A DNA stretch of 64,000 bases from Macrostomum lignano (lineage: Eukaryota). The translations under genes and the position numbers were made by a program. Of this stretch, positions 6,657-38,571 are shown piece by piece (the first letter of the stretch is position 1; every line of letters begins with the position of its first letter). The stretch is taken from assembly GCA_002269645.1 (NCBI GenBank), contig NIVC01000222.1:62001-126000 (forward strand), given 5' to 3'. The notes below the pieces were generated by a model that did not search any database, was not told where the DNA came from, and saw only the letters and a program-made list of their open reading frames with translations.

Positions 6657-6663
<7 letters not shown>

Positions 6664-6701: not shown

Positions 6702-6703
<2 letters not shown>

Positions 6704-6894
6704 GAGGACAGACAGAATAAAATTGAGAAGCTGGTTCAGAGTCTGTCAAGCATAAAAGCAGCCTTACCAAGCCCCGAATACAAGGCAAGGCATTAACTTC
6801 AATACTAAAAACCCTGCTAACAGTTTCAAACCCTGCAAGCATTCAATTGCAAAACAGTTTCAAAAAGGTTCAATTTCTATTAATTTTTTGTGAG

Positions 6895-8364: not shown

Positions 8365-8377
8365 CCATTGTCAAACG

Positions 8378-8749
8378 ATGGCTTCGCTGGAGACGCCAGA
8401 CAACCCCGATGTAATCGAGGCGGCGCAAGCCTGGCTGACGGCCAACGCTGACGTGATCGCCTCGCCGCGACTGGGCTGCAGCCAGCAAGCCCTGCTGCAC
8501 CAGAGCCGAACGCAGGAGTCGCTCCTTGCCAAGATTGCCAGCCTAGAAGAGCAGCTGGCGATCGCTTCATCGTCCGAAGCGCAGAAGCTGCAGCAGGCTC
8601 GCGGCCAAGTGTCAATCAACAAGGACGCTATCGCCTACCTGAGACAGATCTCCAGCCTTGAAAGCAACCTAGCCGAGTGCTGCCGCCAAGTGGAAGGCCA
8701 GGCCATCGCTCTGTCCCAGCGTGACAACACGGAACTATTGGAGAAAAAG
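8378..8749 (+). CDS. Exon 1: helical / spectrin-like N-terminus (MASLETPDNP...ELLEKK)
   Basis: ATG at 8378, amphipathic helical sequence, donor AAG|GTGCGA in phase 0. Confidence 0.7.
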
Positions 8750-11700
8750 GTGCGAAATACTTAAATAGTGCTTCGTTCAAAATCCACTCACAAGCTTGAC
8801 AAGTTTCGAAAAGTACGAGGCATTATTGTAAAGTTACAAAGCTCAAAGCGCAGAAAGAATACACTTGAGAGATGCGAAAATTCAAATTTCGCCATTAAAA
8901 TTTGCTTTATTGCCGCGGTGGTAGCATTTCATAAAAAATGGCTTGTTGAACTTGCAAAAAAGCCTGAGCAAAGCACAGAACTACAAGTAGTGATGACTAG
9001 AAAGTCAGGGTCGCATTGAATATATCGATTTTTAGGACAAAAACCATGCAATAGCTTACATAAGATAACTCCGGTGCTCAGGTGTATGATAAATCATTAA
9101 TTTTCTTTAACTATTCCATAAAACGTCACTTCCCAGACTTTCTTTTTACTATATAAGAGCTATCAATCCTGCAAAGCGTTTGCTTAAACCCAAAACTTCA
9201 GCAACTCAGCAACGAGGTGTCGCAGACCTGGGAATGGGTGACTCGGCTCGGCGAGCTGACCCAGCTGCACCTGAAGAATTCGGCAGATTATCAATGGTTC
9301 TATCACGAAGCCAACGAGCTTGAAGAGGTGATCAACTCGCGAAATCTGGCTAACGCTCAAGTCGTTGGTTCGATTCCGCCAACAGGACAGCTGAGCTCTA
9401 TGCAGCGGATGAACACGGTCTTGAGTGTGAGTTTCTTCTGTGATTGCGGAAAAATGCAGGGGATAAATGGGATTAAATTGGATTTCGTGTCAAAGGGTCG
9501 GCAGGCAAATACAGTGGAGGAACGCAGAGGAAGACCAACGGGCCGCTGTCCCTCCATAACTAACTTTTGCCATCTGTTGGATGTGGCATACGAGCTGCAC
9601 TGGCCCAGAAGACAGTGGCAGGGGCGCCCACGAAGACACTGTATATCGCGGCGCCCTTTAGGGGTTGCGGCCTCCTCCAATGCTCATGGTCCAGCGAAAA
9701 AAGACAAGAAATACTCACAGAAGGGTTGTGAGTACGAAATCCTCTCACAACCAGAGTTGAGGCACGCCCTCGTGCACACGGGCTCACAAAGGGTGTACGT
9801 GTACAAGCAGCCCTTTGACTTTCTTACCTTCAGGCATGTACAACACCCTCTGTGCTTTGGGGGTTGGCCCTGATGGGTGAGAATCCAATAAATAACTTTA
9901 CCATCCACAGTCTTCATAATTATACGTCGGAAACCTTTTTACCTCCACTTGCAATGATGACTTGTAATAGGTGTACTGGTATCAAGGCGTGAAACCTAAA
10001 AAATATTTCTCTTTTCTTCAGGACAACTACTCACAGCTGCTGCTGCTGTCACAGCGCACCGACCAGCTGATGTCGAAGAGTCACAGCGTGGTGCCGCTGT
10101 ACCGCCGCTGCCAGCCAGTGGATGTTGGCTACCCGGCCAGAAATATTTTCCGTTTCGACGATGGAGAGGTTTGCTTGCTTATGCGTATCTGGGGTCTGCA
10201 GTGTGGGGTCTGCAGTGTGGGGTCTGCAGTGTGGGTCTGCAGTGTGGGGTCTGCAATGTTGGGTCTGCAGTGTGACGTCTGCAGTGGGGGGGGGTCTGCA
10301 GTGTGGGTCTGCAGTGTGGGGTCTGCAGTGTGGGGTCTGCAATCTTGGGTCTGCAGTGTGACGTCTGCAGTGTTGGGTCTGCAATGTGGGTCTGCAGTGT
10401 GGGTCTGCAGTGTGGGGTCTGCAATCTTGGGTCTGCAGTGTGACGTCTGCAGTGTGAGGTCTGCAGTTGGGGTCTGCAGTTGAGGTCTGCAATGTGGGGT
10501 CTGCAGTGTGGGGTCTGCAATCTTGGGTCTGCAGTGTGACGTCTGCAGTGTGAGGTCTGCAGTGTGGGGTCTGCAATGTGGGTCTGCAGTGTGGGGTCTG
10601 CAATCTTGGGTCTGCAGTGTGACGTCTGCAGTGTGAGGTCTGCAGTTGGGGTCTGCAGTTGAGGTCTGCAATGTGGGGTCTGCAGTGTGGGGTCTGCAAT
10701 CTTGGGTCTGCAGTGTGACGTCTGCAGTGTGGGGTCTGCAATGTGGGTCTGCAGTGTGGGGTCTGCAATCTTGGGTCTGCAGTGTGACGTCTGCAGTGTG
10801 AGGTCTGCAGTGTGGGGTCTGCAATGTGGATCTGCAGTGGGATATGCATGTTCCGATGTTCACTCACTATGCATCCTATGCTCACTGATGCATCCTATGC
10901 TCACTATGCATCCTATGCTCACTATGCATTCTATGCTCACTATGCATCCTATGCTCACTATGCATCCTATGCTCACTGATGCATCCTATGCTCACTATGC
11001 ATTCTATTCTCTCCCACCAGAACACTCTGAACAACTCCGAGGAGGTGACAGTACTGGACAACTCAAACTCATTCAACTGGAAGGTGGCCAAGGCCGATGG
11101 AACAGTGATGGAGGTGCCCAGCATCTGCATCTGGCTCCCGCCGCCAGACACTGAGGCTGTTGAAGTGGCTGTCGTGTGAGTCAGCCTAATTTCCCCACCG
11201 ATTTCCCCAAAAATTTTGCATTCTCACCAACGAATGGTCAACTTCGTATAACTTTAATGTATAACCAAGTAGACTTTGACAGAAAGGATGCAATGAAAGG
11301 AGTCAATCGAAGAAAAACATGCCGTAACTTTAGGGACGCTAAATTGCTTAGGACATGTGTCCCCAAGACGTTGTCCACTTCTGGATGGTGCGGTAGCTGA
11401 CTTTGCGGCCAAGGTCCCACTATCTTGACAACGGGCCCGGGTTGTTTGAAGGTACACGCCAGAGGCGCGGTCGCCACCAGTAACCTGTGCAGGAGTACAC
11501 CCGGTGAAAACTCCCACAAACGAGACGGAACTCCCGGTCTGTATAACAGACGAAGGTTCTTGACGCAACTGTACTAGAGATGGCCGATTGAGGGACTCCA
11601 TGCGAGTAATACAAGGACAGTCTAGTCCGTGCTGGAAATGAGGACTTTTGCATAGGGGGATCTTCTAGCTGGTAAGCGATAATTCTAGACCAAAATTCCC

Positions 11701-13402
11701 TCCTAAGCCTCAGGATCTCGAGGGTGGATAATAGATGACGCCATTTTAATGTCTTTCCAGTTCATATAGATGGATTCGATGCGGCAGGGGGATGAGGAAG
11801 TGCAGGTTCCAGAGCTCTCTCGTGGTGCACATTCTACAGGGACTTATTTAGAAGCACTGTTACTGCTATGATTATTTGATTGGGTTTGGCTCATACTCGG
11901 TGATCTCCACTCTGATCCTCAGTTTCTATTCCATGCCTTGTGACAGGCGCACTCTCTACTCACACTTCATAACACGACTAAGAGCAATGGGGGGAGATTC
12001 AAGGGTCGGTCCAGATAAAAAAGTTGCCAGTTCGGGTGCTTTCAGTTATCAGGGAAGGTTCGGTGTCGCGAGAAAACAGAACTGCACGAGGGATTGAAAC
12101 CCAGCGGACAGGAGAGGGGAAGATGCCGCTCAGGGCTCAAGACAAGCTCCTATTTATAGCCCCGAGATCATGTGTCACGCAAGACCGTGACCTGTCCTTG
12201 ACATCCGTTACCAAGCAACTCTGATGAGGTCACCCGCCAGCCGCGCTATGATTGGAGGAGACATTGGGGTGGGGAGAAGCGGAGAAAATTATTGATTATG
12301 GGGGATTATGTAACAGGCGGGGAAAAGCTTGGGCACATATAGGGGGTCGTAAAGCTGTCACATGATTGATTTCGAACAACAGAAAACAGGTGGGGTTGGT
12401 GCTCGGGGGAGCGGGTGGGCGATAAGCAGGAGTCATTGTGATAACTCATCCCAATGAATAATCCCAATGAGTCATCCCAAATGAGTCATCCCAATGAGTC
12501 ATCCCAATGAGTAATCACAATGAGTCATCCCAATGAGTCATCCCAATGAGTAATCACAATGAGTAATCCCAATGAGTCATCCCAATGAGTCATCCCAATG
12601 AGTCATCCCAATGAGTTATCTCAATGAGTAATCCCAATGAGTCATCCAAATGAGTCATCCCAATGAGTAATCCCAATGAGTAATCCCAATGAGTCATCCC
12701 AATGGCTCATCTCGGGGCACAGGTATCACAGAGGAGAAAGGGAGGTAGGATAAAAATTATTGGAGGCCCAGGGCGCTGCTACATTAAATGTAGTGTTTAG
12801 AAGTTTTTGAAATAATTTTTTAAGAGTTAGTTCGTCTACCTCGGTGGTCTGGTCCCCGACGTACGCGAGGATCTGCGTCGTCGCCGCGGGCTTGCCTGGG
12901 CTGCCTTCCGCTCTGTGAGGGCGGTCCTGCAGTCTGAGGCCCTTCCGGACCGCCAGAGGGCGGCTTTGTTTCAGGCGGTAGTCGAAACCGGCCTGCTTTA
13001 CAACGCCGAGACCTGGACGCTGACAGACTCGCTCGAACATCAAGTCGACGCGGCGCACGCTGGCCTGCTGCGCGCCGCCTTCAAGATCGGCGACGAGCGA
13101 GTCACCAACGCGGCACTCTATCGCCGCGACGGCCGGGCCCGTCCAAGTGACCTGCTCCGCCGTCGGTGACTCCAGCTGGCAGGCCACATCATCTGCGCCG
13201 AGTCGTACTGCCCAGAGCCGGTGCAGGAGGTGCTGCTGCTGACACTGCAGGCACCCTACCGGCGAGGACAGGCGCGCACTCGGCGTTTCGTCGTCTGCCT
13301 GCTGGCTGACGCCGGCGCCCCGGACTCTGCCGGCGGAGCGGCCTATGTTCGCACTCTGGCCTTGAGACGCACCCTGTGACACTAGAGACTATCCAGTGTA
13401 TT

Positions 13403-13456
<54 letters not shown>

Positions 13457-16400
13457 GCGGAAGGTGGTCTAGGGCTGCCTATGCAGGCAGTCCAAGAACC
13501 TAGCCACCAGATCGCCATCGGCCAAATCCTCCAGTTGGTGTAGGTCCGTCGCGTGCCGAGCTCCGGCCAGGGCCGGACATTCGAGGAAGTGGTCCTTGTC
13601 TTCTAAGAGGTCGCACCGGAGGCATCTGCTATCCTCCCTAGTGCTGATAGTACGCCGTAGAAAGATCGTGACCGGCACGCATTTGAGCTATGGAAACCTG
13701 AAGCGCGCGAGGGCGAGCAGGCATCGAGGGGGTCTTGCTGTAGACCCGCTTCAGCCGGTCATTCAGGAGAGGCTTATAGTTGATGAGACGGCGTATGCGG
13801 CTTCGGGCGGCCTCGATGTCGATCCCTAGAAGGTCCTGGGGGAGCAGAAAGGCGTTCTTTGCCTCGGTGTCGGCTCTCTCGTTACCGGGAGTCCCAGAAT
13901 GACCTGGGATCCACTGCAGGACCACGTCGGCGTGGCTCTCCACCTGCGTCAGCTTGCGCTTGAGCGACTCGAGCAGAGGGTTCAGGGAGTGCTGCCGACC
14001 TTTGAGCGCCGCAATGGCCGATTGGCTGTCGGTGAGGATCAGGGCAGAGTCCTGCTTTGTCTCAAGGATGTGGTCCAGGGCGAGGTGCAGAGCTGAGAGT
14101 TCAGCTTGGAACGAGCTACACCAGCGCCCGGTAGCAGCTCCCTCAATCCAAACCACCTGGCCCGAAGTAGGGGCGACTGCCACACAGGCTGCCCCTCCAT
14201 TCTCCGTTCCTTCGGATGCAGATCCGTCGGTGAAATAGTGGATCTTGCGGTCGCCCCATGATTTAATGGTGTCTTCCGTCGCCGACCGCCTGGTCTCTGG
14301 CGGATCGTTCCTGGAGATCGGCTGAGTCAGGTGTTCCCAAAGGGTGACCCGATCCTCGATTCTCGGAAGCCAGGGCTTGTTTCTGATCCAGTTCGATTCC
14401 CGGCGTGGGCAATGCAGAATCTGCTCGGATTCCAGCTTGGCTTGATCCCGGATCGGGTCGGGTCGGTTGTTGTTGTTGTTTTTTTCTAAAAAACAGAAGT
14501 TTTCCGGTATTTACGGTAACGTTATAATTTTTTGGCTAGCTACTGGAGCAATGATTTTCGTCGGGATAATTATTGTACAAACGATTTTTATTACTTTTAA
14601 CGTAATGACCTCTACACTTCCGTAGTACCTTTTTTAAATTAAAAAGTTCCTAACACACAAAAAACTTTTCTAGAATTCGACGCAAGCTGCGCAACACGTG
14701 GGCAAGTCTGCTAACCGAAGTTCAGCAGTGGCTGACGCAGTTCTACTCCGACTATTTGCAGAAGCTGCTCAGCAATGACACCGTGGTGAGCTGTTTAACG
14801 CTGACTAAAATCTGTTTCAAACGTAGTTTCTTTTTAACTATAATAAGATTTTATCAGACAGTAAGCTCTTCATTGCACCCTTATAGACTGCGGAGCCATC
14901 AGCTCAGCTGACATTCCTGAACTTTCTCACCCAGCTGGAGGAAGCCCTCAGTGACGGCCTACTGGGAGACGAGGGCCAGCAGCGCAGTCAGCTGGTTGAA
15001 GCGGTTCAAGCCGTTCGAGACCGACTCGTGCTCAGTTGTGAGTTATTCATGCTGATAATTACGTTTCAAATAATCTACCTAACGGGGATGGGCTTTAAGG
15101 TACCAAAGGACTCCAGTAATTCAATCTGAGAATTCAATCAAACTCCAGTTCAAAGAGCACTGCACGGTATTTTCAATTGAAGAGGCATCCTTCTACGAGT
15201 AGTTGAGTGGTCGCCAGCACTAGGGGCTTTAGCACCAGGGGCTTTAGTACCAGGGGCTTTAGCACCAGGGGCTTTAGCACCACGGGCTTTAGCACCAGGG
15301 GCTTTAGCACCAGGGGCTTTAGCACCACGGGCTTTAGCACCACGGGCTTTAGCACCACGGGCTTTAGCACCAGGGGCTATAGCACCAGGGGCTTTAGCAC
15401 CAGGGGCTTTAGCACCAGGGCTTTAGCACCACGGGCTTTAGCACCACGGGCTTTAGCACCACGGGCTTTAGCACCAGGGGCTTTAGCACCAGGGGCTATA
15501 GCACCAGGGGCTTTAGCACCACGGGCTTTAGCACCACGGGCTTTAGCACCGCGGGCTTTACCACCACGGGCTTTAGCACCACGGGCTTTAGCACCAGGGG
15601 CTTTAGCACCAGGGGCTTTAGCACCAGGGGCTTTAGTACCACGGGCTTTAGCACCAGGGGCTTTAGTACCAGGGGCTTTAGCACCAGGGGCTTTAGCACC
15701 AGGGGCTTTAGCACCACGGGCTTTAGCACCAGGGGCTTTAGCACCAGGGGCTTTAGCACCACGGGCTTTAGCACCAGGGGCTTTTACACTGGAGACTTTT
15801 ACACGGGCTTTAGAATTCAATGTCCAGGTATTAAAAATCACATAGTCGAGAAAACTTTCTGGTCACTTTCGCAAACTTTAAGTTTTATAATCTTGAAATT
15901 CTAATTCTCTTCAATGCTGTCGAGTTTTGAGCTATCAGAAGTTAACGGCGAGCTTTTTCGACTTGCTTGCTGAAACGCCCCCACACCGTTTCATCATTGC
16001 AGCGCCGGACCAGAGTTCGACGGTTCGCTCGAGCGACGCCGTTCTGCTTCGATCTTTGCTTGAGAAGCTGCTTGAGCACATGCGAAACTGGAAATGCCTC
16101 AACGAGCAGTTGGAATTTTTCAAGCGCGACCACAGCGGGCTAACGGAAGAGTCGGCTCAGATGATGACCGCCATTTCTGTCCTACAGTGAGTTCGGGCCA
16201 ACTCTAGGGGAACTCTTGTGTTGTTGTGATCACGCTTCAGTCTGTTTGTGAGCACGCTCCAGTCTGTTTGTGAGCACGCTCCAGTCTGTTTGTGATCACG
16301 CTCCAGTCTGTTTGTGATCACGCTCCAGTCTGTTTGTGATCACGCTCCAGTCTGTTTGTGATCACGCTCCAGTCTGTTTGTGAGCACGCTCCAGTCTGTT

Positions 16401-19400
16401 TGTGAGCATGCTCCAGTCTATTTGTGAGCATGCTCCAGTCTGTTTGTGAGCACGCTTCAGTCTATTTGTGAGCATGCTCCAGTCTGTTTGTGAGCATGCT
16501 ATAGTCTGTTTGTGAGCATGCTCCAGTCTGTTTGTGAGCATGCTCCAGTCTGTTTGTGAGCATGCTCCAGTCTGTTTGTGAGCATGCTCCAGTCTGTTTG
16601 TGATCACGCTCCAGTCTGTTTGTGAGCACGCTCCAGTCGGTTTGTGATCACGCTCCAGTCTGTTTGTGATCACGCTCCAGTCTGTTTGTGAGCACGCTCC
16701 AGTCTGTTTGTGAGCATGCTCCAGTCTGTTTGTGAGCACGCTCCAGTCTGTTTGTGAGCATGCTCCAGTCTGTTTGTGAGCACGCTCCAGTCTGTTTGTG
16801 AGCACGCTCCAGTCTGTTTGTGAGCATGCTCCAGTCTGTTTGTGAGCACGCTCCAGTCTGTTTGTGAGCACGCTCCAGTCTGTTCCTGAGAACGCTCTAT
16901 ATACGCTCTTATAAGTAACTTCTCAATGAATTTTGCAGGAAAATGCAGGAAGAAAGTGGAAAACAAATGGAAGATCTGCAGACCCGGATGCAGGATTGGA
17001 GTCTCTACTCAACTCGTTTGACAGAGGTCAGAAAATCAACAACAGTTAATCAAAGCGTCCAAGTAAGCAGAAAATTTGACTCAAGTTAAATTTGGATCAG
17101 TTTTGCACATCAAAAACTGTTTTTATTACCTACCCATTTATCTACAGCAGCGTGAAAGCCAGTCACTAGCAGTGCAAGTCACCGGGAGCTCGCAGACAGA
17201 CGGTCAATCGGTAACGAACTCGCAGAGAATGGACACCACCGATCTTCTATTCGAAGGTAGAAGAGGCAGCCTTCGCGACAGTCGCGAGTCTGAGTGGTAT
17301 CCCCTTCTCGAGTCCAGGCCAGTCGACCTAACCAGCATCCGGGATCTGACAGTCGCCAAGGATCAGGTCCGCCAGCAGCTCAGACGTGCGTCAATGAGCG
17401 AGAGCACGCAGACCAAACCGCCCCCAAGGAGTCCGGTGGGGCTCCTGTCTCCCACTTCGAAATCTGTGCAGGCCGGTTATTCGGAATATCGACAGAACTC
17501 TACTCAGGATATTGAGGATCCAGTATTTCGTCAGGCTGTGTACAACTACATTCAAGAGTACGAGTCCGAAGTAAAACGCTACCTGCACGAAAATATTCCG
17601 AGTCCGATAGTGCACTCTCAGTCCGCGTACGCTGCTGCATCGGCATCTGAGGGCCGATCCCAGCTGAGAGTTGGCGTCGAAGAAAAGTTAGAGTACTCGG
17701 AAACGCGAAAGCTTGCAACGGCAATTTCGAGCTCCAATGAAAGCGAAGCGAATGCGACTTCAAGCTCAGGCTCCGGCACCGGTGCTGCTGTTGGAAAAAC
17801 CCAAGCAGTCACGCGCGAGGCTGGCTGTCAAACTGCGCAGATACCAATAGCCAGCACAGGTTGCGATAAGCAGAGCGTGATGGCGGAGAGCAAGATTGCC
17901 TGCCACCTGCACTATACTGTGCAGAATGATCTGTTCTGTCTAGAAATAGAAAGCAGCGACTCAGAGACTCAAACAGATCAGTCTGGCCAAACAGTGGAGA
18001 CGGAAGAGAAACTCATTAAGTACGAAAGCCGGGTTGATGAGAGAGTCGAAAGACAAAGCGTAGACATCGAGATAAAAATCGAAGAGGAGACAAACCGTAA
18101 AAAGCTCATGGCAACTCAACCACCGAGAAAAGTAGAAGTTCAAGATGCCTGCGTAAAAACGACCTGTGAAACAGAGGAATCGGTTTTAGTTGTTAAGCAA
18201 CAAATAAAATATATGCAACTGTCTCAGGAGCTAGTCACTGCCGAACAGGGAGTCAACTGCGTAATCGAAAACCAAATTTCAGATTTTGAGTGTTCATTTG
18301 ACCTGGAATTTGCGGATAGCAGTGTAAATTGCAAAACTGAAGAAAAAACTCAGGAAATCAGCACTTGCGAAGTGCACTATGAGAACCTCTTTAGTGAAGC
18401 CGCACTTCAAACAGATTCTTTCACAGGCGAAAGCAGCATCTCCGTAAGCCCAAATCTTGCGTGCATGAGCGTTGAAATGGAAATTTCAACCGAAGATGCG
18501 TCTGTTTTATGCAAAGAGGAGACAAAAATTCGAGAGTGTTTCTCTTACTTAGAAAAATCTTATAAGGAAAGCAGCACCAAAGCACAGATGACAACGAAAG
18601 ACGTTTCTGTAATAGCCAAACAAGTCGTCAGCGAACTGGGATTTGCTGAAGAAGTGGAAAAAATCAAAGCAGTTAACAGCAACGTAAAATTCAGTAACAT
18701 GCCGAAAATTCTAGAGTGCAACAGCTCGCTTGAATTTATGCACGAAAATGCTGGTGTACGAGCACAGCCGACCGTAGATGAGATGGGCGTCTGTGAGCAA
18801 GTTATGTTCTCTCATGGTGCCATGAGATTCAAGGATGAACCAAAGGTCGAAGAGTGCGCCAGCTCGCTTGAGTTGTTGGTCAAGTCAGGCTTCGTTCGTA
18901 CGAAAACTAAAGTCCAAGAAGCTTCTGTGCAAGTCAATCAAGAAGTCGGAGAGATTGGCGTATACAACGAGGTACTAAGCGCGAGCGAAAACTTAAGATT
19001 CAAGGACGAACCGCAGGTCGAAGAGTGCGCCAGCTCGCTTGAGTTGTTAGTCAAGTCAGGCTTCGTTCGTACGAAAACTAAAGTCCAAGAAGCTTCTGTG
19101 CAAGTCAATCAAGAAGTCGAAGAGATTGGCGTATACAACGAGGTACAAAGCGCGAGCGAAAACGTAAGATTCAAGGACGAACCGAAGGTCGAAGAGTGCG
19201 CCAGCTCGCTTGAGCTTATACACAAAACGACTGGTGTGCGAGCACAGCCAACCGTGGATGAGATGGGCGTTTCTGAGACGCTGCTCACATCAGACGGGTC
19301 GGTACGCTACAAGGAGGAGCCGAAACTCAACGAGTGCTTCACATTCTCCGAGACCTCATTCCTGGAAGGCGCTATCCGAGTAGAGACACTTGTGAAGGAG

Positions 19401-28400: not shown

Positions 28401-31400
28401 ATGGGCGTCTGTGAGATGCTGCAGACATCAGTCGGGTCGGTACGCTACAAGGAAGAGCTTGAAGTAAGAGAGTGCGCATCCTTCCTCGAGACTTCGGTCA
28501 TGGTCGGCTCCGTTCGAGCGAAACAAGAAGTAGACGGCATGGGCTTCTGTGAGATGCTGCAGACATCGGACTCGACAATGCGCTACAAAGAAGAGCTAGA
28601 AGTGAGAGAATGCGCTTCGTTCCTTGAGACATCCTTCATGGTCGGCTCCGTTCGAGCGAAACAGGATGTGGAGGACATGGGCGTCTGTGAGATGCTGCAG
28701 ACATCAGTCGGGTCGGTACGCTACAAGGAAGAGCTTGAAGTAAGAGAGTGCGCATCCTTCCTCGAGACTTCGGTCATGGTCGGCTCCGTTCGAGCGAAAC
28801 AAAAAGTAGACGGCATGGGCTTCTGTGAGATGCTGCAGACATCGGACTCGACAATGCGCTACAAAGAAGAGCTAGAAGTGAAAGAATGCGCTTCGTTCCT
28901 TGAGACATCCTTCATGGTCGGCTCCGTTCGAGCGAAACAGGATGTGGAGGACATGGGCGTCTGTGAGATGCTGCAGACATCAGTCGGGTCGGTACGCTAC
29001 AAGGAAGAGCTTGAAGTAAGAGAGTGCGCATCCTTCCTCGAGACTTCGGTCATGGTCGGCTCCGTTCGAGCGAAACAAAAAGTAGACGGCATGGGCTTCT
29101 GTGAGATGCTGCAGACATCGGACTCGACAATGCGCTACAAAGAAGAGCTAGAAGTGAGAGAATGCGCTTCGTTCCTTGAGACATCCTTCATGGTCGGCTC
29201 CGTTCGAGCGAAACAGGATGTGGAGGACATGGGCGTCTGTGAGATGCTGCAGACATCAGTCGGGTCGGTACGCTACAAGGAAGAGCTTGAAGTAAGAGAG
29301 TGCGCATCCTTCCTCGAGACTTCGGTCATGGTCGGCTCCGTTCGAGCGAAACAAAAAGTAGACGGCATGGGCTTCTGTGAGATGCTGCAGACATCGGACT
29401 CGACAATGCGCTACAAAGAAGAGCTAGAAGTGAGAGAATGCGCTTCGTTCCTTGAGACATCCTTCATGGTCGGCTCCGTTCGAGCGAAACAGGATGTGGA
29501 GGACATGGGCGTCTGTGAGATGCTGCAGACATCAGTCGGGTCGGTACGCTACAAGGAAGAGCTTGAAGTAAGAGAGTGCGCATCCTTCCTCGAGACTTCG
29601 GTCATGGTCGGCTCCGTTCGAGCGAAACAAGAAGTAGACGGCATGGGCTTCTGTGAGATGCTGCAGACATCGGACTCGACAATGCGCTACAAAGAAGAGC
29701 TAGAAGTGAGAGAATGCGCTTCGTTCCTTGAGACATCCTTCATGGTCGGCTCCGTTCGAGCGAAACAGGATGTGGAGGACATGGGCGTCTGTGAGATGCT
29801 GCAGACATCAGTCGGGTCGGTACGCTACAAGGAAGAGCTTGAAGTAAGAGAGTGCGCATCCTTCCTCGAGACTTCGGTCATGCTCGGCTCCGTTCGAGCG
29901 AAACAAGAAGTAGACGGCATGGGCGTCTGTGAGATGCTGCAGACATCGGACTCGACAATGCGCTACAAAGAAGAGCTAGAAGTGAGAGAATGCGCTTCGT
30001 TCCTTGAGACATCCTTCATGGTCGGCTCCGTTCGAGCGAAACAGGATGTGGAGGACATGGGCGTCTGTGAGATGCTGCAGACATCAGTCGGGTCGGTACG
30101 CTACAAGGAAGAGCTTGAAGTAAGAGAGTGCGCATCCTTCCTCGAGACTTCGGTCATGGTCGGCTCCGTTCGAGCGAAACAAGAAGTAGACGGCATGGGC
30201 TTCTGTGAGATGCTGCAGACATCGGACTCGACAATGCGCTACAAAGAAGAGCTAGAAGTGAGAGAATGCGCTTCGTTCCTTGAGACATCCTTCATGGTCG
30301 GCTCCGTTCGAGCGAAACAGGATGTGGAGGACATGGGCGTCTGTGAGATGCTGCAGACATCAGTCGGGTCGGTACGCTACAAGGAAGAGCTTGAAGTAAG
30401 AGAGTGCGCATCCTTCCTCGAGACTTCGGTCATGGTCGGCTCCGTTCGAGCGAAACAAGAAGTAGACGGCATGGGCTTCTGTGAGATGCTGCAGACATCG
30501 GACTCGACAATGCGCTACAAAGAAGAGCTAGAAGTGAGAGAATGCGCTTCGTTCCTTGAGACATCCTTCATGGTCGGCTCCGTTCGAGCGAAACAGGATG
30601 TAGAGGACATGGGCGTCTGTGAGATGCTGCAGACATCAGTCGGGTCGGTACGCTACAAGGAGGAGCCGAAACTCGACGAGTGCTTCACATTCTCCGAGAC
30701 CACATTCCTGGAAGGCGCTATCAGAGTAGAGACACTTGTCAACGAGGCTTCAGTTCAAGTGGAACAGCCAGTCGATGGCATGGGCGTCTGTGAGATTCTG
30801 CTCACATCAGACGGTTCGGTACGCTACAAGGAGGAGCCGAAACTCGACGAGTGCTTCACATTCTCCGAGACCACATTCCTGGAAGGCGCTATCAAAGTAG
30901 AGACACTTGTCAAGGAGGCTTCAGTTCAAGTGGAACAGCCAGTCGATGGCATGGGCGCCTGTGAGATGCTGCAGACATCAGTCGGGTCGGTACGCTACAA
31001 GGAAGAGCTTGAAGTAAGAGAGTGCGCATCCTTCCTCGAGACTTCGGTCATGCTCGGCTCCGTTCGAGCGAAACAAGAAGTAGACGGCATGGGCGTCTGT
31101 GAGATGCTGCAGACATCGGACTCGACAATGCGCTACAAAGAAGAGCTAGAAGTGAGAGAATGCGCTTCGTTCCTTGAGACATCCTTCATGGTCGGCTCCG
31201 TTCGAGCGAAACAGGATGTGGAGGACATGGGCGTCTGTGAGATGCTGCAGACATCAGTCGGGTCGGTACGCTACAAGGAAGAGCTTGAAGTAAGAGAGTG
31301 CGCATCCTTCCTCGAGACTTCGGTCATGGTCGGCTCCGTTCGAGCGAAACAAGAAGTAGACGGCATGGGCTTCTGTGAGATGCTGCAGACATCGGACTCG

Positions 31401-34400
31401 ACAATGCGCTACAAAGAAGAGCTAGAAGTGAGAGAATGCGCTTCGTTCCTTGAGACATCCTTCATGGTCGGCTCCGTTCGAGCGAAACAGGATGTAGAGG
31501 ACATGGGCGTCTGTGAGATGCTGCAGACATCAGTCGGGTCGGTACGCTACAAAGAGGAGCCGAAACTCGACGAGTGCTTCACATTCTCCGAGACCACATT
31601 CCTGGAAGGCGCTATCAGAGTAGAGACACTTGTCAACGAGGCTTCAGTTTAAGTGGAACAGCCAGTCGATGGCATGGGCGTCTGTGAGATTCTGCTCACA
31701 TCAGACGGTTCGGTACGCTACAAGGAGGAGCCGAAACTCGACGAGTGCTTCACATTCTCCGAGACCACATTCCTGGAAGGCGCTATCAGAGTAGAGACAC
31801 TTGTCAAGGAGGCTTCAGTTCAAGTGGAACAGCCAGTCGATGGCATGGGCGCCTGTGAGATGCTGCAGACATCAGTCGGGTCGGTACGCTACAAGGAAGA
31901 GCTTGAAGTAAGAGAGTGCGCATCCTTCCTCGAGACTTCGGTCATGGTCGGCTCCGTTCGAGCGAAACAAGAAGTAGACGGCATGGGCTTCTGTGAGATG
32001 CTGCAGACATCGGACTCGACAATGCGCTACAAAGAAGAGCTAGAAGTGAGAGAATGCGCTTCGTTCCTTGAGACATCCTTCATGGTCGGCTCCGTTCGAG
32101 CGAAACAGGATGTGGAGGACATGGGCGTCTGTGAGATGCTGCAGACATCAGTCGGGTCGGTACGCTACAAGGAAGAGCTTGAAGTAAGAGAGTGCGCATC
32201 CTTCCTCGAGACTTCGGTCATGGTCGGCTCCGTTCGAGCGAAACAAGAAGTAGACGGCATGGGCTTCTGTGAGATGCTGCAGACATCGGACTCGACAATG
32301 CGCTACAAAGAAGAGCTAGAAGTGAGAGAATGCGCTTCGTTCCTTGAGACATCCTTCATGGTCGGCTCCGTTCGAGCGAAACAGGATGTGGAGGACATGG
32401 GCGTCTGTGAGATGCTGCAGACATCAGTCGGGTCGGTACGCTACAAGGAAGAGCTTGAAGTAAGAGAGTGCGCATCCTTCCTCGAGACTTCGGTCATGGT
32501 CGGCTCCGTTCGAGCGAAACAAGAAGTAGACGGCATGGGCTTCTGTGAGATGCTGCAGACATCGGACTCGACAATGCGCTACAAAGAAGAGCTAGAAGTG
32601 AGAGAATGCGCTTCGTTCCTTGAGACATCCTTCATGGTCGGCTCCGTTCGAGCGAAACAGGATGTGGAGGACATGGGCGTCTGTGAGATGCTGCAGACAT
32701 CAGTCGGGTCGGTACGCTACAAGGAAGAGCTTGAAGTAAGAGAGTGCGCATCCTTCCTCGAGACTTCGGTCATGGTCGGCTCCGTTCGAGCGAAACAAGA
32801 AGTAGACGGCATGGGCTTCTGTGAGATGCTGCAGACATCGGACTCGACAATGCGCTACAAAGAAGAGCTAGAAGTGAGAGAATGCGCTTCGTTCCTTGAG
32901 ACATCCTTCATGGTCGGCTCCGTTCGAGCGAAACAGGATGTGGAGGACATGGGCGTCTGTGAGATGCTGCAGACATCAGTCGGGTCGGTACGCTACAAGG
33001 AAGAGCTTGAAGTAAGAGAGTGCGCATCCTTCCTCGAGACTTCGGTCATGGTCGGCTCCGTTCGAGCGAAACAAGAAGTAGACGGCATGGGCTTCTGTGA
33101 GATGCTGCAGACATCGGACTCGACAATGCGCTACAAAGAAGAGCTAGAAGTGAGAGAATGCGCTTCGTTCCTTGAGACATCCTTCATGGTCGGCTCCGTT
33201 CGAGCGAAACAGGATGTGGAGGACATGGGCGTCTGTGAGATGCTGCAGACATCAGTCGGGTCGGTACGCTACAAGGAAGAGCTTGAAGTAAGAGAGTGCG
33301 CATCCTTCCTCGAGACTTCGGTCATGGTCGGCTCCGTTCGAGCGAAACAAGAAGTAGACGGCATGGGCTTCTGTGAGATGCTGCAGACATCGGACTCGAC
33401 AATGCGCTACAAAGAAGAGCTAGAAGTGAGAGAATGCGCTTCGTTCCTTGAGACATCCTTCATGGTCGGCTCCGTTCGAGCGAAACAGGATGTGGAGGAC
33501 ATGGGCGTCTGTGAGATGCTGCAGACATCAGTCGGGTCGGTACGCTACAAGGAAGAGCTTGAAGTAAGAGAGTGCGCATCCTTCCTCGAGACTTCGGTCA
33601 TGGTCGGCTCCGTTCGAGCGAAACAAGAAGTAGACGGCATGGGCTTCTGTGAGATGCTGCAGACATCGGACTCGACAATGCGCTACAAAGAAGAGCTAGA
33701 AGTGAGAGAATGCGCTTCGTTCCTTGAGACATCCTTCATGGTCGGCTCCGTTCGAGCGAAACAGGATGTGGAGGACATGGGCGTCTGTGAGATGCTGCAG
33801 ACATCAGTCGGGTCGGTACGCTACAAGGAAGAGCTTGAAGTAAGAGAGTGCGCATCCTTCCTCGAGACTTCGGTCATGGTCGGCTCCGTTCGAGCGAAAC
33901 AAGAAGTAGACGGCATGGGCTTCTGTGAGATGCTGCAGACATCGGACTCGACAATGCGCTACAAAGAAGAGCTAGAAGTGAGAGAATGCGCTTCGTTCCT
34001 TGAGACATCCTTCATGGTCGGCTCCGTTCGAGCGAAACAGGATGTGGAGGACATGGGCGTCTGTGAGATGCTGCAGACATCAGTCGGGTCGGTACGCTAC
34101 AAGGAAGAGCTTGAAGTAAGAGAGTGCGCATCCTTCCTCGAGACTTCGGTCATGGTCGGCTCCGTTCGAGCGAAACAAGAAGTAGACGGCATGGGCTTCT
34201 GTGAGATGCTGCAGACATCGGACTCGACAATGCGCTACAAAGAAGAGCTAGAAGTGAGAGAATGCGCTTCGTTCCTTGAGACATCCTTCATGGTCGGCTC
34301 CGTTCGAGCGAAACAGGATGTGGAGGACATGGGCGTCTGTGAGATGCTGCAGACATCAGTCGGGTCGGTACGCTACAAGGAAGAGCTTGAAGTAAGAGAG

Positions 34401-37400
34401 TGCGCATCCTTCCTCGAGACTTCGGTCATGGTCGGCTCCGTTCGAGCGAAACAAGAAGTAGACGGCATGGGCTTCTGTGAGATGCTGCAGACATCGGACT
34501 CGACAATGCGCTACAAAGAAGAGCTAGAAGTGAGAGAATGCGCTTCGTTCCTTGAGACATCCTTCATGGTCGGCTCCGTTCGAGCGAAACAGGATGTGGA
34601 GGACATGGGCGTCTGTGAGATGCTGCAGACATCAGTCGGGTCGGTACGCTACAAGGAAGAGCTTGAAGTAAGAGAGTGCGCATCCTTCCTCGAGACTTCG
34701 GTCATGGTCGGCTCCGTTCGAGCGAAACAAGAAGTAGACGGCATGGGCTTCTGTGAGATGCTGCAGACATCGGACTCGACAATGCGCTACAAAGAAGAGC
34801 TAGAAGTGAGAGAATGCGCTTCGTTCCTTGAGACATCCTTCATGGTCGGCTCCGTTCGAGCGAAACAGGATGTGGAGGACATGGGCGTCTGTGAGATGCT
34901 GCAGACATCAGTCGGGTCGGTACGCTACAAGGAAGAGCTTGAAGTAAGAGAGTGCGCATCCTTCCTCGAGACTTCGGTCATGGTCGGCTCCGTTCGAGCG
35001 AAACAAGAAGTAGACGGCATGGGCTTCTGTGAGATGCTGCAGACATCGGACTCGACAATGCGCTACAAAGAAGAGCTAGAAGTGAGAGAATGCGCTTCGT
35101 TCCTTGAGACATCCTTCATGGTCGGCTCCGTTCGAGCGAAACAGGATGTGGAGGACATGGGCGTCTGTGAGATGCTGCAGACATCAGTCGGGTCGGTACG
35201 CTACAAGGAAGAGCTTGAAGTAAGAGAGTGCGCATCCTTCCTCGAGACTTCGGTCATGGTCGGCTCCGTTCGAGCGAAACAAGAAGTAGACGGCATGGGC
35301 TTCTGTGAGATGCTGCAGACATCGGACTCGACAATGCGCTACAAAGAAGAGCTAGAAGTGAGAGAATGCGCTTCGTTCCTTGAGACATCCTTCATGGTCG
35401 GCTCCGTTCGAGCGAAACAGGATGTGGAGGACATGGGCGTCTGTGAGATGCTGCAGACATCAGTCGGGTCGGTACGCTACAAGGAAGAGCTTGAAGTAAG
35501 AGAGTGCGCATCCTTCCTCGAGACTTCGGTCATGGTCGGCTCCGTTCGAGCGAAACAAGAAGTAGACGGCATGGGCTTCTGTGAGATGCTGCAGACATCG
35601 GACTCGACAATGCGCTACAAAGAAGAGCTAGAAGTGAGAGAATGCGCTTCGTTCCTTGAGACATCCTTCATGGTCGGCTCCGTTCGAGCGAAACAGGATG
35701 TGGAGGACATGGGCGTCTGTGAGATGCTGCAGACATCAGTCGGGTCGGTACGCTACAAGGAAGAGCTTGAAGTAAGAGAGTGCGCATCCTTCCTCGAGAC
35801 TTCGGTCATGGTCGGCTCCGTTCGAGCGAAACAGAAGTAGACGGCATGGGCTCTGTGAGATGCTGCAGACATCGGACTCGACAATGCGCTACAAAGAAGA
35901 GCTAGAAGTGAGAGAATGCGCTTCGTTCCTTGAGACATCCTTCATGGTCGGCTCCGTTCGAGCGAAACAGGATGTGGAGGACATGGGCGTCTGTGAGATG
36001 CTGCAGACATCAGTCGGGTCGGTACGCTACAAGGAAGAGCTTGAAGTAAGAGAGTGCGCATCCTTCCTCGAGACTTCGGTCATGGTCGGCTCCGTTCGAG
36101 CGAAACAAGAAGTAGACGGCATGGGCTTCTGTGAGATGCTGCAGACATCGGACTCGACAATGCGCTACAAAGAAGAGCTAGAAGTGAGAGAATGCGCTTC
36201 GTTCCTTGAGACATCCTTCATGGTCGGCTCCGTTCGAGCGAAACAGGATGTGGAGGACATGGGCGTCTGTGAGATGCTGCAGACATCAGTCGGGTCGGTA
36301 CGCTACAAGGAAGAGCTTGAAGTAAGAGAGTGCGCATCCTTCCTCGAGACTTCGGTCATGGTCGGCTCCGTTCGAGCGAAACAGAAGTAGACGGCATGGG
36401 CTCTGTGAGATGCTGCAGACATCGGACTCGACAATGCGCTACAAAGAAGAGCTAGAAGTGAGAGAATGCGCTTCGTTCCTTGAGACATCCTTCATGGTCG
36501 GCTCCGTTCGAGCGAAACAGGATGTGGAGGACATGGGCGTCTGTGAGATGCTGCAGACATCAGTCGGGTCGGTACGCTACAAGGAAGAGCTTGAAGTAAG
36601 AGAGTGCGCATCCTTCCTCGAGACTTCGGTCATGGTCGGCTCCGTTCGAGCGAAACAGAAGTAGACGGCATGGGCTTCTGTGAGATGCTGCAGACATCGG
36701 ACTCGACAATGCGCTACAAAGAAGAGCTAGAAGTGAGAGAATGCGCTTCGTTCCTTGAGACATCCTTCATGGTCGGCTCCGTTCGAGCGAAACAGGATGT
36801 GGAGGACATGGGCGTCTGTGAGATGCTGCAGACATCAGTCGGGTCGGTACGCTACAAGGAAGAGCTTGAAGTAAGAGAGTGCGCATCCTTCCTCGAGACT
36901 TCGGTCATGGTCGGCTCCGTTCGAGCGAAACAAGAAGTAGACGGCATGGGCTTCTGTGAGATGCTGCAGACATCGGACTCGACAATGCGCTACAAAGAAG
37001 AGCTAGAAGTGAGAGAATGCGCTTCGTTCCTTGAGACATCCTTCATGGTCGGCTCCGTTCGAGCGAAACAGGATGTGGAGGACATGGGCGTCTGTGAGAT
37101 GCTGCAGACATCAGTCGGGTCGGTACGCTACAAGGAAGAGCTTGAAGTAAGAGAGTGCGCATCCTTCCTCGAGACTTCGGTCATGGTCGGCTCCGTTCGA
37201 GCGAAACAGAAGTAGAGGCATGGGCTTCTGTGAGATGCTGCAGACATCGGACTCGACAATGCGCTACAAAGAAGAGCTAGAAGTGAGAGAATGCGCTTCG
37301 TTCCTTGAGACATCCTTCATGGTCGGCTCCGTTCGAGCGAAACAGGATGTGGAGGACATGGGCGTCTGTGAGATGCTGCAGACATCAGTCGGGTCGGTAC

Positions 37401-38571
37401 GCTACAAGGAAGAGCTTGAAGTAAGAGAGTGCGCATCCTTCCTCGAGACTTCGGTCATGGTCGGCTCCGTTCGAGCGAAACAAGAAGTAGACGGCATGGG
37501 CTTCTGTGAGATGCTGCAGACATCGGACTCGACAATGCGCTACAAAGAAGAGCTAGAAGTGAGAGAATGCGCTTCGTTCCTTGAGACATCCTTCATGGTC
37601 GGCTCCGTTCGAGCGAAACAGGATGTGGAGGACATGGGCGTCTGTGAGATGCTGCAGACATCAGTCGGGTCGGTACGCTACAAGGAAGAGCTTGAAGTAA
37701 GAGAGTGCGCATCCTTCCTCGAGACTTCGGTCATGGTCGGCTCCGTTCGAGCGAAACAAGAAGTAGACGGCATGGGCTTCTGTGAGATGCTGCAGACATC
37801 GGACTCGACAATGCGCTACAAAGAAGAGCTAGAAGTGAGAGAATGCGCTTCGTTCCTTGAGACATCCTTCATGGTCGGCTCCGTTCGAGCGAAACAGGAT
37901 GTGGAGGACATGGGCGTCTGTGAGATGCTGCAGACATCAGTCGGGTCGGTACGCTACAAGGAAGAGCTTGAAGTAAGAGAGTGCGCATCCTTCCTCGAGA
38001 CTTCGGTCATGGTCGGCTCCGTTCGAGCGAAACAAGAAGTAGACGGCATGGGCTTCTGTGAGATGCTGCAGACATCGGACTCGACAATGCGCTACAAAGA
38101 AGAGCTAGAAGTGAGAGAATGCAGACATCGGTCGGCTCCGTTCGAGCGAAACAGGATGTGTGAGATGCTGCAGACATCAGTCGGGTCGGTACGCTACAAG
38201 GAAGAGCTTGAAGTAAGAGAGTGCGCATCCTTCCTCGAGACTTCGGTCAGAGCGATAGACGGCACTTCTGTGAGATGCTGTCGGACTCGACAATGCGCTA
38301 CAAAGAAGAGCTAGAAGTGAGAGAGTGTGTCAGCTTTCTTGAACGTCATTTTGTTCAGAGTGAACTTTTGGTTTCTCCTAATTCTTCAAGCGTTGGTGTT
38401 CAGTGCAACCAGCCGATTGATTCTACGTCCGTTTGTTTTGAGGTTTCGACATCGACTGGGTTTATTTCGACTTTCGCAGCATTCGCCGATGCGTCGGCTC
38501 AAGTTTTTCAAGAAGTCCGTGGAACTGGTCTTCTTATCGAAGAGAAAGTTTTCGTTACTCCTTTCGATTAA
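8378..38571 (+). CDS. Giant plakin-domain (spectrin-repeat/SH3) protein with a massive tandem-repeat tail; 9 coding exons
   Basis: Exons 8378-8749, 9202-9426, 10022-10168, 11021-11175, 14674-14785, 14887-15037, 16003-16186, 16939-17062, 17148-(31652/38571). All introns are GT..AG with phases 0,0,0,2,0,1,2,0 that join in frame (first 8 exons = 1470 nt = 490 aa). Plakin motifs are in exons 2-5. Confidence 0.8.
9202..9426 (+). CDS. Exon 2: plakin spectrin-repeat segment
   Basis: SQTWEWVTRLGELTQLHLKNSADYQWFYHEANE aligns by eye with dystonin/MACF1 [33 protein letters not shown]. Acceptor CTTCAG, donor GTGAGT at 9427. Confidence 0.85.
10022..10168 (+). CDS. Exon 3: spectrin repeat leading into the SH3
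   Basis: QLMSKSHSVVPLYRR resembles plakin LMGKAKTIIQLKPR. Acceptor TTTTCTTCAG, donor GAG|GTTTGC. Confidence 0.85.
10190..10840. repeat. Intronic CTGCAG-rich minisatellite (GGGGTCTGCAGTGTG and variants, ~13-16 bp)
   Basis: Direct reading. Confidence 0.9.
10863..11004. repeat. Intronic 18-bp minisatellite (CTCACTATGCATCCTATG), ~8 copies
   Basis: Direct reading; it ends at the polypyrimidine tract of the exon 4 acceptor. Confidence 0.9.
11021..11175 (+). CDS. Exon 4: plakin-type SH3 domain
   Basis: EEVTVLDNSNSFNWKVAKADGTVMEVPSICIWLPPPDTEAVEVA matches the plakin SH3 signature (dystonin [44 protein letters not shown]). Donor GTGAGT at 11176, phase 2. Confidence 0.92.
12446..12704. repeat. Intronic 13-bp minisatellite (TCATCCCAATGAG), ~20 copies
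   Basis: Direct reading. Confidence 0.95.
12831..13402 (+). mobile_element. 5'-truncated RTE-like LINE (C-terminal part of ORF2), inactivated
   Basis: FVYLGG..DLRRRRGLAWAAF..LFQAVVETGLLYNAETWTLT..LQLAGHI, typical of the RTE post-RT region; in-frame TGA at 13167. Confidence 0.85.
13403..13455. repeat. (TTG/AAC)n microsatellite, ~17 units, at the junction of two LINEs
   Basis: Direct reading. Confidence 0.95.
13456..14465 (-). mobile_element. 5'-truncated RNase H-containing non-LTR retrotransposon (I/R1-group-like), 3' end
   Basis: RNase H motifs HYFTDGS, SFQAELSAL, ILTDSQSA, LQWIPGH and GNERAD. After a frameshift comes a CCHC knuckle (CLRCDLLEDKDHFLEC), followed by (AAC)n. Confidence 0.9.
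14674..14785 (+). CDS. Exon 5 (helical, post-SH3)
   Basis: Acceptor CTTTTCTAG (phase 2 completes Val); IRRKLRNTWASLLTEVQQW; donor GTGAGC. Confidence 0.8.
14887..15037 (+). CDS. Exon 6 (helical)
   Basis: Acceptor CCCTTATAG; open frame TAEPSAQLTFLNFLTQLEEALS...; donor GTGAGT, phase 1. Confidence 0.8.
15216..15812. repeat. Intronic 15-bp minisatellite (GGGGCTTTAGCACCA), ~39 copies
   Basis: Direct reading; source of the (ALAPG)n and (VLKPL)n ORFs. Confidence 0.95.
16003..16186 (+). CDS. Exon 7 (helical)
   Basis: Acceptor CATTGCAG, phase 1; LLRSLLEKLLEHMRNWKCLNEQLEFF; donor GTGAGT, phase 2. Confidence 0.8.
16225..16883. repeat. Intronic 22-bp minisatellite (CTCCAGTCTGTTTGTGAGCACG), ~30 copies
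   Basis: Period 22 (16257, 16279...). Confidence 0.95.
16939..17062 (+). CDS. Exon 8 (coiled-coil-like)
   Basis: Acceptor TTTTGCAG, phase 2; KMQEESGKQMEDLQTRMQDW; donor GTAAGC, phase 0. Confidence 0.8.
17148..38571 (+). CDS. Exon 9: giant terminal exon (unique acidic region, repeat arrays, short unique C-terminus ending VFVTPFD)
   Basis: Acceptor TCTACAG(CAG) at 17147, in the frame of the 4858-aa ORF. Open to TAA 31650-31652, then the same frame is open to ~35834. Indels follow, then a unique tail ending TAA at 38571. Confidence 0.75.
18783..27572 (+). repeat. Coding repeat zone 1: 171-bp/57-aa P units mixed with 138-bp/46-aa N and T units in (P)1-3-N-T cassettes; first three units degenerate
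   Basis: P = MGVCEMLLTSDGSVRYKEEPKLDECFTFSETTFLEGAIRVETLVKEASVQVEQPVDG; N ends NECASFLETTVLSESIRVSQSVND; T ends SVMMGSVRVKQEIDD. Confidence 0.95.
27573..38340 (+). repeat. Coding repeat zone 2: near-perfect 276-bp (A+B, 92-aa) dimer array with two P-unit interruptions
   Basis: A = MGVCEMLQTSVGSVRYKEELEVRECASFLETSVMVGSVRAKQEVDG; B = MGFCEMLQTSDSTMRYKEELEVRECASFLETSFMVGSVRAKQDVED. P units occur near 30660-30955 and 31555-31845. Confidence 0.95.

Follow-up and report, generated by a model that had tools for sequence, protein, structure and literature searches.

A putative giant plakin-headed repeat protein gene in the flatworm Macrostomum lignano

The 64,000-nucleotide (nt) window analyzed here (positions 62,001 to 126,000 of the forward strand of contig NIVC01000222.1, assembly GCA_002269645.1, from the flatworm Macrostomum lignano) contains a plus-strand gene in which eight small exons, all with GT-AG borders, join in frame onto a giant exon at 17148/17151. 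The small exons encode a head resembling the plakin domain of plectin and desmoplakin, and the giant exon encodes a unique acidic region followed by a long array of Cys-containing units of 46 or 57 amino acids (aa). The coordinates of these features are given in Table 1. The first-pass annotation of this sequence had proposed both the eight-exon splicing and the fusion of a plakin-type spectrin/SH3 head to about 130 Cys-containing repeats, and both proposals hold, with corrections to the length of the head, the extent of the open frame, and the 3' end of the gene.

The codons split by introns agree across their junctions (GT+A between exons 4 and 5, T+CG between exons 6 and 7, and CA+G between exons 7 and 8). 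The head comes to 504 aa, rather than the 490 aa first reckoned, once exon 2 runs to 9426. A donor at 9360 was ruled out, the true donor being the GTGAGT at 9426/9427. A paralogous locus, L002 (NIVC01003798.1), matches the window almost perfectly as far as this site and diverges 10 nt beyond it, and P0005, the 1,377-aa protein encoded by L002, joins ...MQRMNTVLS straight to the DNF... of exon 3, supporting the donor at 9426. The extension amounts to 22 residues, and with it a 14-residue gap in the alignment to plectin structure 3pe0 disappears. At the 5' end, an in-frame stop lies about 100 nt upstream of ATG 8378, and exon 1 has a counterpart in L002 (8285-8587) with 50% amino-acid identity. 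After its upstream stop, this L002 homologue of exon 1 (type II, 8135-8587) shows no in-frame ATG; translation may begin in an exon still farther upstream or at an ATG that a trans-spliced leader contributes, and the window gene might be alike despite its ATG at 8378.

The giant exon had been described as 21 kb long, but as a single open reading frame (ORF) it extends for 14.5 kb only, from 17076/17148 to 31649. The ORF at 17076-31652 (plus strand) has 4,858 codons, and further ORFs of the repeat continue up to 38314/38571. The product predicted to the first stop has 5,337 aa (about 597 kDa, isoelectric point [pI] 4.4, net charge about -484), in agreement with the lower end of the 5,300 to 7,600 aa estimated initially; the upper figure could be reached only if the stop were read through and six or more frameshifts were repaired. 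By eye, there is no signal peptide or long hydrophobic segment in the N terminus or in the tail of the paralogue, and the product looks cytoplasmic.

The identity of the head is carried by its SH3 domain and the spectrin repeats (SR) around it. The Pfam model SH3_10 (PF17902) matches over its full length (1-65 of 65) with E values of 3.8e-13 and 2.2e-12 and scores of 47.3 to 49.7 bits, twice the gathering score of 22.8 bits, thus returning the plakin SH3 match that the first-pass annotation had anticipated. The match straddles the junction of exons 3 and 4, and the sequence at this junction, FRFDDGE/NTL, is kept in P0005 and in P0001, a fragment of P0005; SH3_10 is also precomputed on P0001, P0005, and the gene at a second locus, L001. 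Among all sequences in the Protein Data Bank (PDB), the only significant relatives of the head are plectin 3pe0, an SR4-SH3-SR5 fragment (phmmer E of 6.2e-10; head residues 134-314 against chain residues 82-263, nearly gapless), and desmoplakin 3r6n, a four-repeat fragment (E of 1.5e-9; 126-318 against 159-352). From these alignments, the SH3 domain appears to be embedded between SR4 and SR5, colinear with the solved plakin domains. Of the two plakin motifs originally cited, NS....WKV....G....VPS.C...PPP..EA is present exactly (head residues 276-308); the other is spaced differently, reading W.W, then 10 residues rather than five, then HL.....Y..F..EA (residues 148-175). A search of 5.8 billion proteins with the head returned no plakin outside M. 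lignano at E<=10.

Public sequences bear out the proposed joining of this head to the giant exon. P0003 (UniRef A0A1I8H8D0) reads ...TTVNQSVQ/RESQSLAVQ..., bridging 17062 to 17151 and placing the acceptor at the second AG of CAGCAG; P0003 and P0002 (UniRef A0A1I8GZB3) are both 100% identical to the window over exon 8. L001 (NIVC01000828.1, GCA_002269645.1) is 96 to 97% identical to window positions 13281-21687, and on this similarity we regard it as a near-identical second copy of the window gene. Its NCBI model is 885 aa long, includes SH3_10, and runs from the head into exon 9; the frame continues past the end of the model, which is thus 3'-truncated rather than stopped. L001 also contains, at 15075-18834, a 1.5-kb run of N followed by a second start of the giant exon (16580-18834 against window 17088-19337, 97.7% identity), an arrangement that shows the public assembly to be interrupted or duplicated within the array at this locus. 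P0005 is colinear with the window model through exon 3, the SH3 domain, the later head exons, the unique region, and the 57/46-aa units, with all exon junctions ungapped or nearly so, and L002 homologues of exons 1 and 2 lie 5' of its annotated start with 50% and 67% identity.

The M. lignano GenBank annotation was derived from genome-guided RNA sequencing (RNA-seq), with StringTie/TACO assembly, mapped de novo transcripts, and TransDecoder ORFs (PMC5730564). Its models therefore count as transcript evidence, which belongs to the sister copy and the paralogue rather than to the window copy, and on these models the window gene is probably transcribed. Fragments of the gene are already present in the public annotation as hypothetical proteins (the BOX15_Mlig000934 models) or under the mistaken names 'Nesprin-1' and 'AMOTL1', and look-ups of the exact products P0003 and P0001 returned no record.

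The unique region that opens the giant exon has no Pfam match and shares the motif VY.YI.E.E.EVK.YL with P0005 and the 97% copy. Beyond it, the whole array (18636-38330) comprises about 131 units, each 138 or 171 bp long; Tandem Repeats Finder reports these two periods, together with higher-order ones of 276 and 447 bp, from 18825 to 38122. Counted in all frames, the window contains 135 intact units of 46 or 57 aa, representing 40 distinct sequences, and about 125 of them belong to the window gene; these, together with six frameshifted units and fragments, account for the approximately 130 repeats first reported. From 18636, the order of 46-aa (a) and 57-aa (B) units is BBaBaaBBBaaBBBaaBBaaaaBBaa... 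Positions G2, C25, E30, R15, K17, E19, and R39 are invariant or nearly so, and a second Cys occupies position 4 in most units. The 46-aa unit is itself a duplication of a motif of about 23 aa (x-C-x-x-hydrophobic-L-x-T-S-V-x-x-G-S-V-R-x-K-x-E): the two halves align with a score of 43, as against 17 +/- 4 for shuffled sequences, and none of 2,000 shuffles reached 43.

The array is coding rather than satellite DNA, as judged from the 14.5-kb open frame, the absence of any comparable minus-strand ORF, unit lengths that are multiples of three, and the conservation of those lengths, along with nonsynonymous-to-synonymous rate ratios (dN/dS), between paralogues. Every unit over 17 kb of the array measures 138 or 171 nt, with none off-length before 35.7 kb, and a 4,858-codon frame combined with lengths in multiples of three over this distance is far beyond chance. 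The encoded repeat region is strongly acidic (pI 4.35, net charge -436; 15% Glu, 12% Val, 10% Ser, and 3.9% Cys), with a grand average of hydropathy of -0.24, and a charge-hydropathy calculation places it on the putatively foldable side of the boundary.

The repeat had been presented as unlike any recognized family, and searches agree. Pfam matches within the repeats to T6SS_Tdi1_C, DAOA, AOC_like, CBM_21, RRM_9, and H2TH_5 were rejected as artefacts of summing weak repeats, none of them having a stretch that passed alone, and a profile of the unit had no match in the PDB at E<=10. An exhaustive HMMER profile search of 1.84 billion representative proteins recovered P0005, P0004, and P0007 (the window's own ORF at 38284-38571) along with two spurious proteins, P0006 and P0008, which are unrelated tandem-repeat and zinc-finger proteins with 12 to 19 matched residues per repeat. 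A word-indexed search with the unit, covering 5.8 billion proteins, returned one M. lignano fragment. In every database searched, the 46/57-aa unit thus appears to be restricted to M. lignano.

Intron 7 of the window has diverged from L001 by 6.9%, exon 8 by 2.4%, and the unique part of exon 9 by 1.0%, and there are no indels between the two copies over 3.1 kb. Exon 9 shows 14 synonymous and 20 nonsynonymous changes, a pattern pointing to relaxed purifying selection. Over the longer term, the 57- and 46-aa lengths are retained in the consensus units of both type I (window) and type II (L002), although these are only 54% and 37% identical; dN/dS comes to about 0.5 (B units) and 0.27 (a units), synonymous sites being near saturation. 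Within the array, synonymous and nonsynonymous counts against the unit consensus are confounded by shared unit ancestry, and the units after the stop are too uniform for such counts. The family comprises at least two old paralogue lineages with a common architecture, whose heads are 48 to 53% identical. One tract departs from this level: window positions 9214-9436 and L002 positions 9815-10037, covering the 3' two-thirds of exon 2, are about 93 to 100% identical as DNA, whereas the heads are otherwise about 50 to 70% identical as protein, which suggests gene conversion or an extra constraint at the RNA level. The tract contains GGTTCGATTCC, a motif like a tRNA T arm that also occurs in intergenic sequence near 5650 and may be derived from a short interspersed nuclear element; ARAGORN found no tRNA at this tract.

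The first-pass annotation overlooked the first 3,279 positions of the window, in which a tandem paralogue finishes at its 3' end with a tail that the window gene lacks. This tail consists of a Cys-rich unique region of about 330 aa and about 11 copies of a 27-aa repeat, VTRREGTALESTDSVSSARAQLG. The L002 paralogue ends in the same tail (L002 about 23900-25083), nearly identical despite 48% identity otherwise, and the Cys-rich tail has no Pfam match. Since both paralogues are tailed, the complete architecture of the family is head, unique region, array, and tail.

Table 1. Positions of the window gene, the paralogue upstream of it, and neighboring features (SR, spectrin repeat; aa, amino acids)
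Feature	Position	Strand	Description
Upstream tandem paralogue, 3' end	1-3279 (repeat and tail 34-3279)	+	ten 46-aa units, tail, stop at 3279
Exon 1	8378-8749	+	124 codons, ATG 8378; helical/coiled N-terminal head segment; donor AAG/gtgcga
Exon 2	9160-9426	+	89 codons; spectrin-repeat helix with WEW...HLKNSADYQWFYHEA; GTGAGT donor
Exon 3	10022-10168	+	49 codons; last part of SR4, then the plakin SH3 from about 10094 (its first half)
Exon 4	11021-11175	+	second half of SH3 (to about 11140), NSNSFNWKV...VPSICIWLPPPDTEA; ends in phase 2, gtgagt donor
Retroelement remnant in intron 4 (11176-14673)	13641-14183	-	RNase H PF00075, E of 1.2e-11; RVT_3 match
Exon 5	14674-14785	+	helical, SR5 continuation; phases fit; colinear with P0001; homologues in L001 and L002
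Exon 6	14887-15037	+	helical; colinear with P0001; homologue in L001; no tblastn match in L002
Exon 7	16003-16186	+	helical; splice phases, colinearity with P0001, homologous exons
Exon 8	16939-17062	+	last small exon; donor CAA/gtaagc
Unique acidic region	17151-18635	+	495 aa, Ser/Glu-rich; motif VYNYIQEYESEVKRYLHENIPSPIV, then degenerate Cys-containing proto-repeats
In-frame array	18636-31649	+	86 units, each with two Cys, measuring 46 aa (138 bp) or 57 aa (171 bp)
First in-frame stop	31650-31652	+	TAA in place of the CAA of sister units; the 5,337-aa product ends here
Array continuation	31653-35840	+	in frame; one 57-aa and 28 nearly identical 46-aa units
Array with frameshifted junctions	35841-38122	+	includes 137/136-nt units
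Decayed partial units, then non-repeat	38123-38571	+	partial units to about 38330; stop at 38571
Metallophosphoesterase gene, calcineurin-like	56930-59104	+	GDxxD/GNHD in 56930-57250 (Metallophos E of 6e-4), GHYHRN in 58304-59104
393-aa ORF	60329-61510	-	weak BTB/POZ match, E of 0.0025
161-aa ORF	62458-62943	+	weak RRM_1 match, E of 0.0012

Several other features surround the gene or lie in its introns. Intron 4 owes its unusual length (3.5 kb) to a retroelement remnant, and a simple repeat reads as a run of poly-Leu/poly-Val codons at about 13400-13480. Minisatellites that are open in several frames occur at 4200-4850, 7200-8150, 10200-10900, and 15180-15850 (intergenic sequence and introns 3 and 6), where they generate the spurious ORFs SILESASSILE, HCHIPRMDPPE, GLQCGVCSVGSAV, and GALAPGALAP; they crowd the 5 kb that separates exon 1 from the gene upstream. 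Such minisatellites are typical of the repeat-rich M. lignano genome, and one of about 1 kb, reading as repeats of SCWASLPDPQLLGQPP, interrupts the metallophosphoesterase gene downstream. The 393-aa and 161-aa ORFs near the end of the window are probably neighboring genes.

Taken together, the head, its splicing onto the giant exon, and the confinement of the unit to one species make it probable that this is an M. lignano gene for a giant, cytoplasmic, scaffold-like protein, lineage-specific in its repeats and plakin-type in its head. In plectin, BPAG1e, and desmoplakin, the plakin domain directs the protein to junctional plaques or to partners in the cytoskeleton. By analogy with these and other plakins, the SR4-SH3-SR5 head would anchor the window protein either at a junctional plaque associated with the membrane or at a cytoskeletal partner, and the polyanionic repeat body could form a rod, spring, or spacer on the micrometer scale; if extended, its 4,338 residues would span more than 1 micrometer. 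The regularly spaced Cys residues, flanked by Glu, might permit metal or oxidative cross-linking, and the Cys-rich tail with its 27-aa repeats may provide a second attachment end in full-length members of the family. A tail-less copy such as that in the window would act as a one-ended tether or filler, or could be on its way to becoming a pseudogene. We infer from the behavior of other plakins a function as a plaque or cell-web scaffold anchored to junctions or the cytoskeleton; which structure it might serve is a matter of speculation, candidates being the epidermal cell web, muscle attachments, anchor cells, or intracellular hard parts.

A number of results weigh against assigning the protein this role. 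The functional argument draws on about 180 residues of homology. Neither the head nor the unique region, the units, or the paralogue tail matches a Pfam spectrin, CH, plakin-repeat, EF-hand, or GAR model, so that the spectrin half of the proposed HMMER test came back negative, and a three-frame translation of 3280-8380 showed no CH-like exon by eye. Because these domains are missing, the supposed linker has no recognized second binding module. Of the description of the product as a lineage-specific cytolinker or scaffold, the lineage restriction therefore stands, the unit being found only in M. lignano, whereas the role is taken from the head, with no actin-, intermediate filament-, or microtubule-binding module to accompany it. 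Structure prediction, proposed for the repeat units, gave no confident fold: five consecutive units modeled with AlphaFold2 from a 55-row alignment of the window's own units had a confidence (pLDDT) of 26 and no secondary structure. For the paralogue head (P0005 residues 1-304), a model with a pLDDT of 46 shows a helix, four strands, and long helices; Foldseek matched this low-confidence model to nothing in the PDB at E<=0.001, and SH3 domains and desmoplakin 3r6n appeared only among matches at E of about 1, so that the post-SH3 spectrin repeats are putative at the level of fold. Searches of the literature on Macrostomum and flatworm plakins found no paper on this gene, its expression pattern, or its phenotype. 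Finally, the window copy is 3'-truncated, with an in-frame TAA, downstream frameshifts, and no tail: blastn and tblastn found no homologue of the tail in window positions 3280-64000.

These last features suggest an alternative that overlaps with the scaffold interpretation and that we consider unlikely on balance but worth serious attention, namely, that the window copy is a decaying 3'-truncated tandem duplicate (a young pseudogene or the source of a tail-less product), the tailed paralogues being the working genes. The unit whose CAA has become TAA at 31650 is a recent duplicate of the unit at 30609, and the stretch that follows it (31653-35840) is a very young amplification that either escapes translation or is translated only should the TAA prove spurious. 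The six units of 137 or 136 nt (starts 35709-37084, with shifts to 37220) have lost 1 to 2 nt at the AKQ(E)VDGMG junction; they are confined to the last 2.5 kb, and the lesion recurs at a spacing of 550 nt, having been re-amplified in a way unlike random sequencing error. The array then finishes in the partial units of 38123-38330, beyond which lies unrelated AT-rich sequence, and both other members of the family carry the tail that is absent here. Such decay would have spared much, however: the head exons, all splice sites, and the 14.5-kb ORF are intact, and the exons are 3 to 7 times less diverged from the 97% copy than is intron 7. A stop in the last exon does not trigger nonsense-mediated decay, so a 5,337-aa product is still expected, and the 4.2 kb past the TAA that remains in frame marks the stop as very recent or as an error.

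A bolder extension of the scaffold interpretation, which we rate as improbable, holds that the 23/46-aa Cys-Glu unit is a new folded mini-module (e.g., paired beta-hairpins) that polymerizes or cross-links, by way of metal or disulfide bonds, to build a polymer inside the cell that is anchored by its plakin heads, with the tail a new filament- or membrane-binding domain. Under this proposal, AlphaFold would be blind to the fold of the unit because sequence diversity is lacking. If correct, the polymer would be a previously unrecorded cytoskeletal material that makes up a structure peculiar to flatworms, for instance the epidermal cell web, the core of the anchor cells, or a hard part inside cells.

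It is quite improbable that the copy number of the array, the stop, and the frameshifts are artefacts of long-read assembly and that the true gene runs on into a tail. The units in 31653-35840 are virtually identical, a situation in which assemblers miscount copies; the frameshifts are 1-nt losses, mostly in short runs such as GG and TT, and the public L002 array also has three frame changes. The Mlig_3_7 assembly is, moreover, redundant and repeat-rich, with duplicated blocks of at least 95% identity adding up to 180 Mb (PMC5730564). Nonetheless, we think that the lesions are real rather than sequencing noise, because a 3.1-kb comparison of the window with L001 is free of indels and every unit in the 17 kb of array preceding 35.7 kb has a regular length, whereas random error would not cluster so; in addition, the decay into partial units and then AT-rich sequence is structural and not a matter of base-calling. 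Highly improbable is a nesprin-like or spectraplakin-like linker, or a set of highly diverged plakin repeats: the UniRef name of P0003 ('Nesprin-1') and the very large repeat exon that reportedly follows the plakin domain in giant Shot isoforms (PMC2173965) favor such a reading, but there is no CH domain, no Pfam spectrin match, and no KASH-like transmembrane C terminus in the gene or the paralogue tails (which end ...DDGVFEGFD), the units do not match PF00681 ('Plectin') at E values up to 1, and the unit profile finds no plakin in the PDB or among 1.84e9 proteins.

Plakins are usually described as assemblies of fixed modules: CH domains, plakin domain, rod, plakin repeats, spectrin rod, and GAR domain. 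What is new here is the combination of a plakin head with a lineage-restricted repeat body, unnamed or misnamed fragments of which were already public; the fragmented and misnamed annotation can now be corrected. An SR-SH3-SR head has apparently been recombined in an early-branching flatworm with a lineage-specific tail of more than 4,000 residues, and at least two old paralogue lineages have retained this pairing, in a family that so far appears confined to one species. If the head does target junctional plaques, the family would constitute a natural experiment in the replacement of a cytolinker tail. Because flatworms have no cuticle and rely on intracellular webs, the gene may also offer a way into structures of these animals that are poorly understood. 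M. lignano is amenable to transgenics and RNA interference, which makes the function open to direct tests.

By homology, the closest relative appears to be the plakin domain of plectin and desmoplakin. Residues 134-318 of the head align to 3pe0 and 3r6n almost without gaps, the W-x-W...HLK..A.Y..F helix and the WKV...VPS.C...PPP..EA motif are shared, and the SH3 domain sits inside a region of helical repeats, as in plakins; the SH3 domain and its SR context would accordingly place the product among plakin-domain proteins. It differs from them in its low identity, in a head of about 500 aa with about four helical repeats rather than six to nine spectrin repeats, and in what follows the head, where there is no rod, plakin-repeat, CH, or GAR region; Pfam scans detected no cytoskeleton-binding module of the CH, plakin-repeat, or GAR/EF-hand type. 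The CH domain, long spectrin rod, and EF-hand/GAR domains of the spectraplakins (Shot, VAB-10, dystonin, and MACF1) were not found, and unlike these proteins, the window gene ends within a novel array and its paralogues in an unrelated tail. As for nesprins, no KASH domain was seen by eye, the tails ending ...RSDDGVFEGFD without a hydrophobic span, and there is no CH domain. No unit matches the 38- to 45-aa plakin-repeat model PF00681 at E<=1.

By architecture, the nearest analogue would be the giant Shot isoforms, which, as reported by Roeper and Brown 2003 (PMC2173965), have a plakin-type N-terminal region followed by one very large exon of tandem plakin repeats and are associated with junctions. 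Their repeats are bona fide plakin repeats, accompanied by CH, spectrin-rod, EF-hand, and GAR domains, whereas the window gene has none of these. An analogous layout, with a folded head built from small exons and joined to a single giant exon of charged tandem repeats, is seen in AHNAK/desmoyokin and in trichohyalin and filaggrin (S100-fused type). These proteins are submembranous or cytoskeleton-associated scaffolds, but they have PDZ or S100 heads and unrelated repeats, with no sequence relationship to the present gene. Within M. lignano itself, P0005 and the 97% copy have the same exon structure, head, unique region, and 57/46-aa units; P0005 differs in having an array of about 9 to 10 kb that ends in the Cys-rich tail and its 27-aa repeats.

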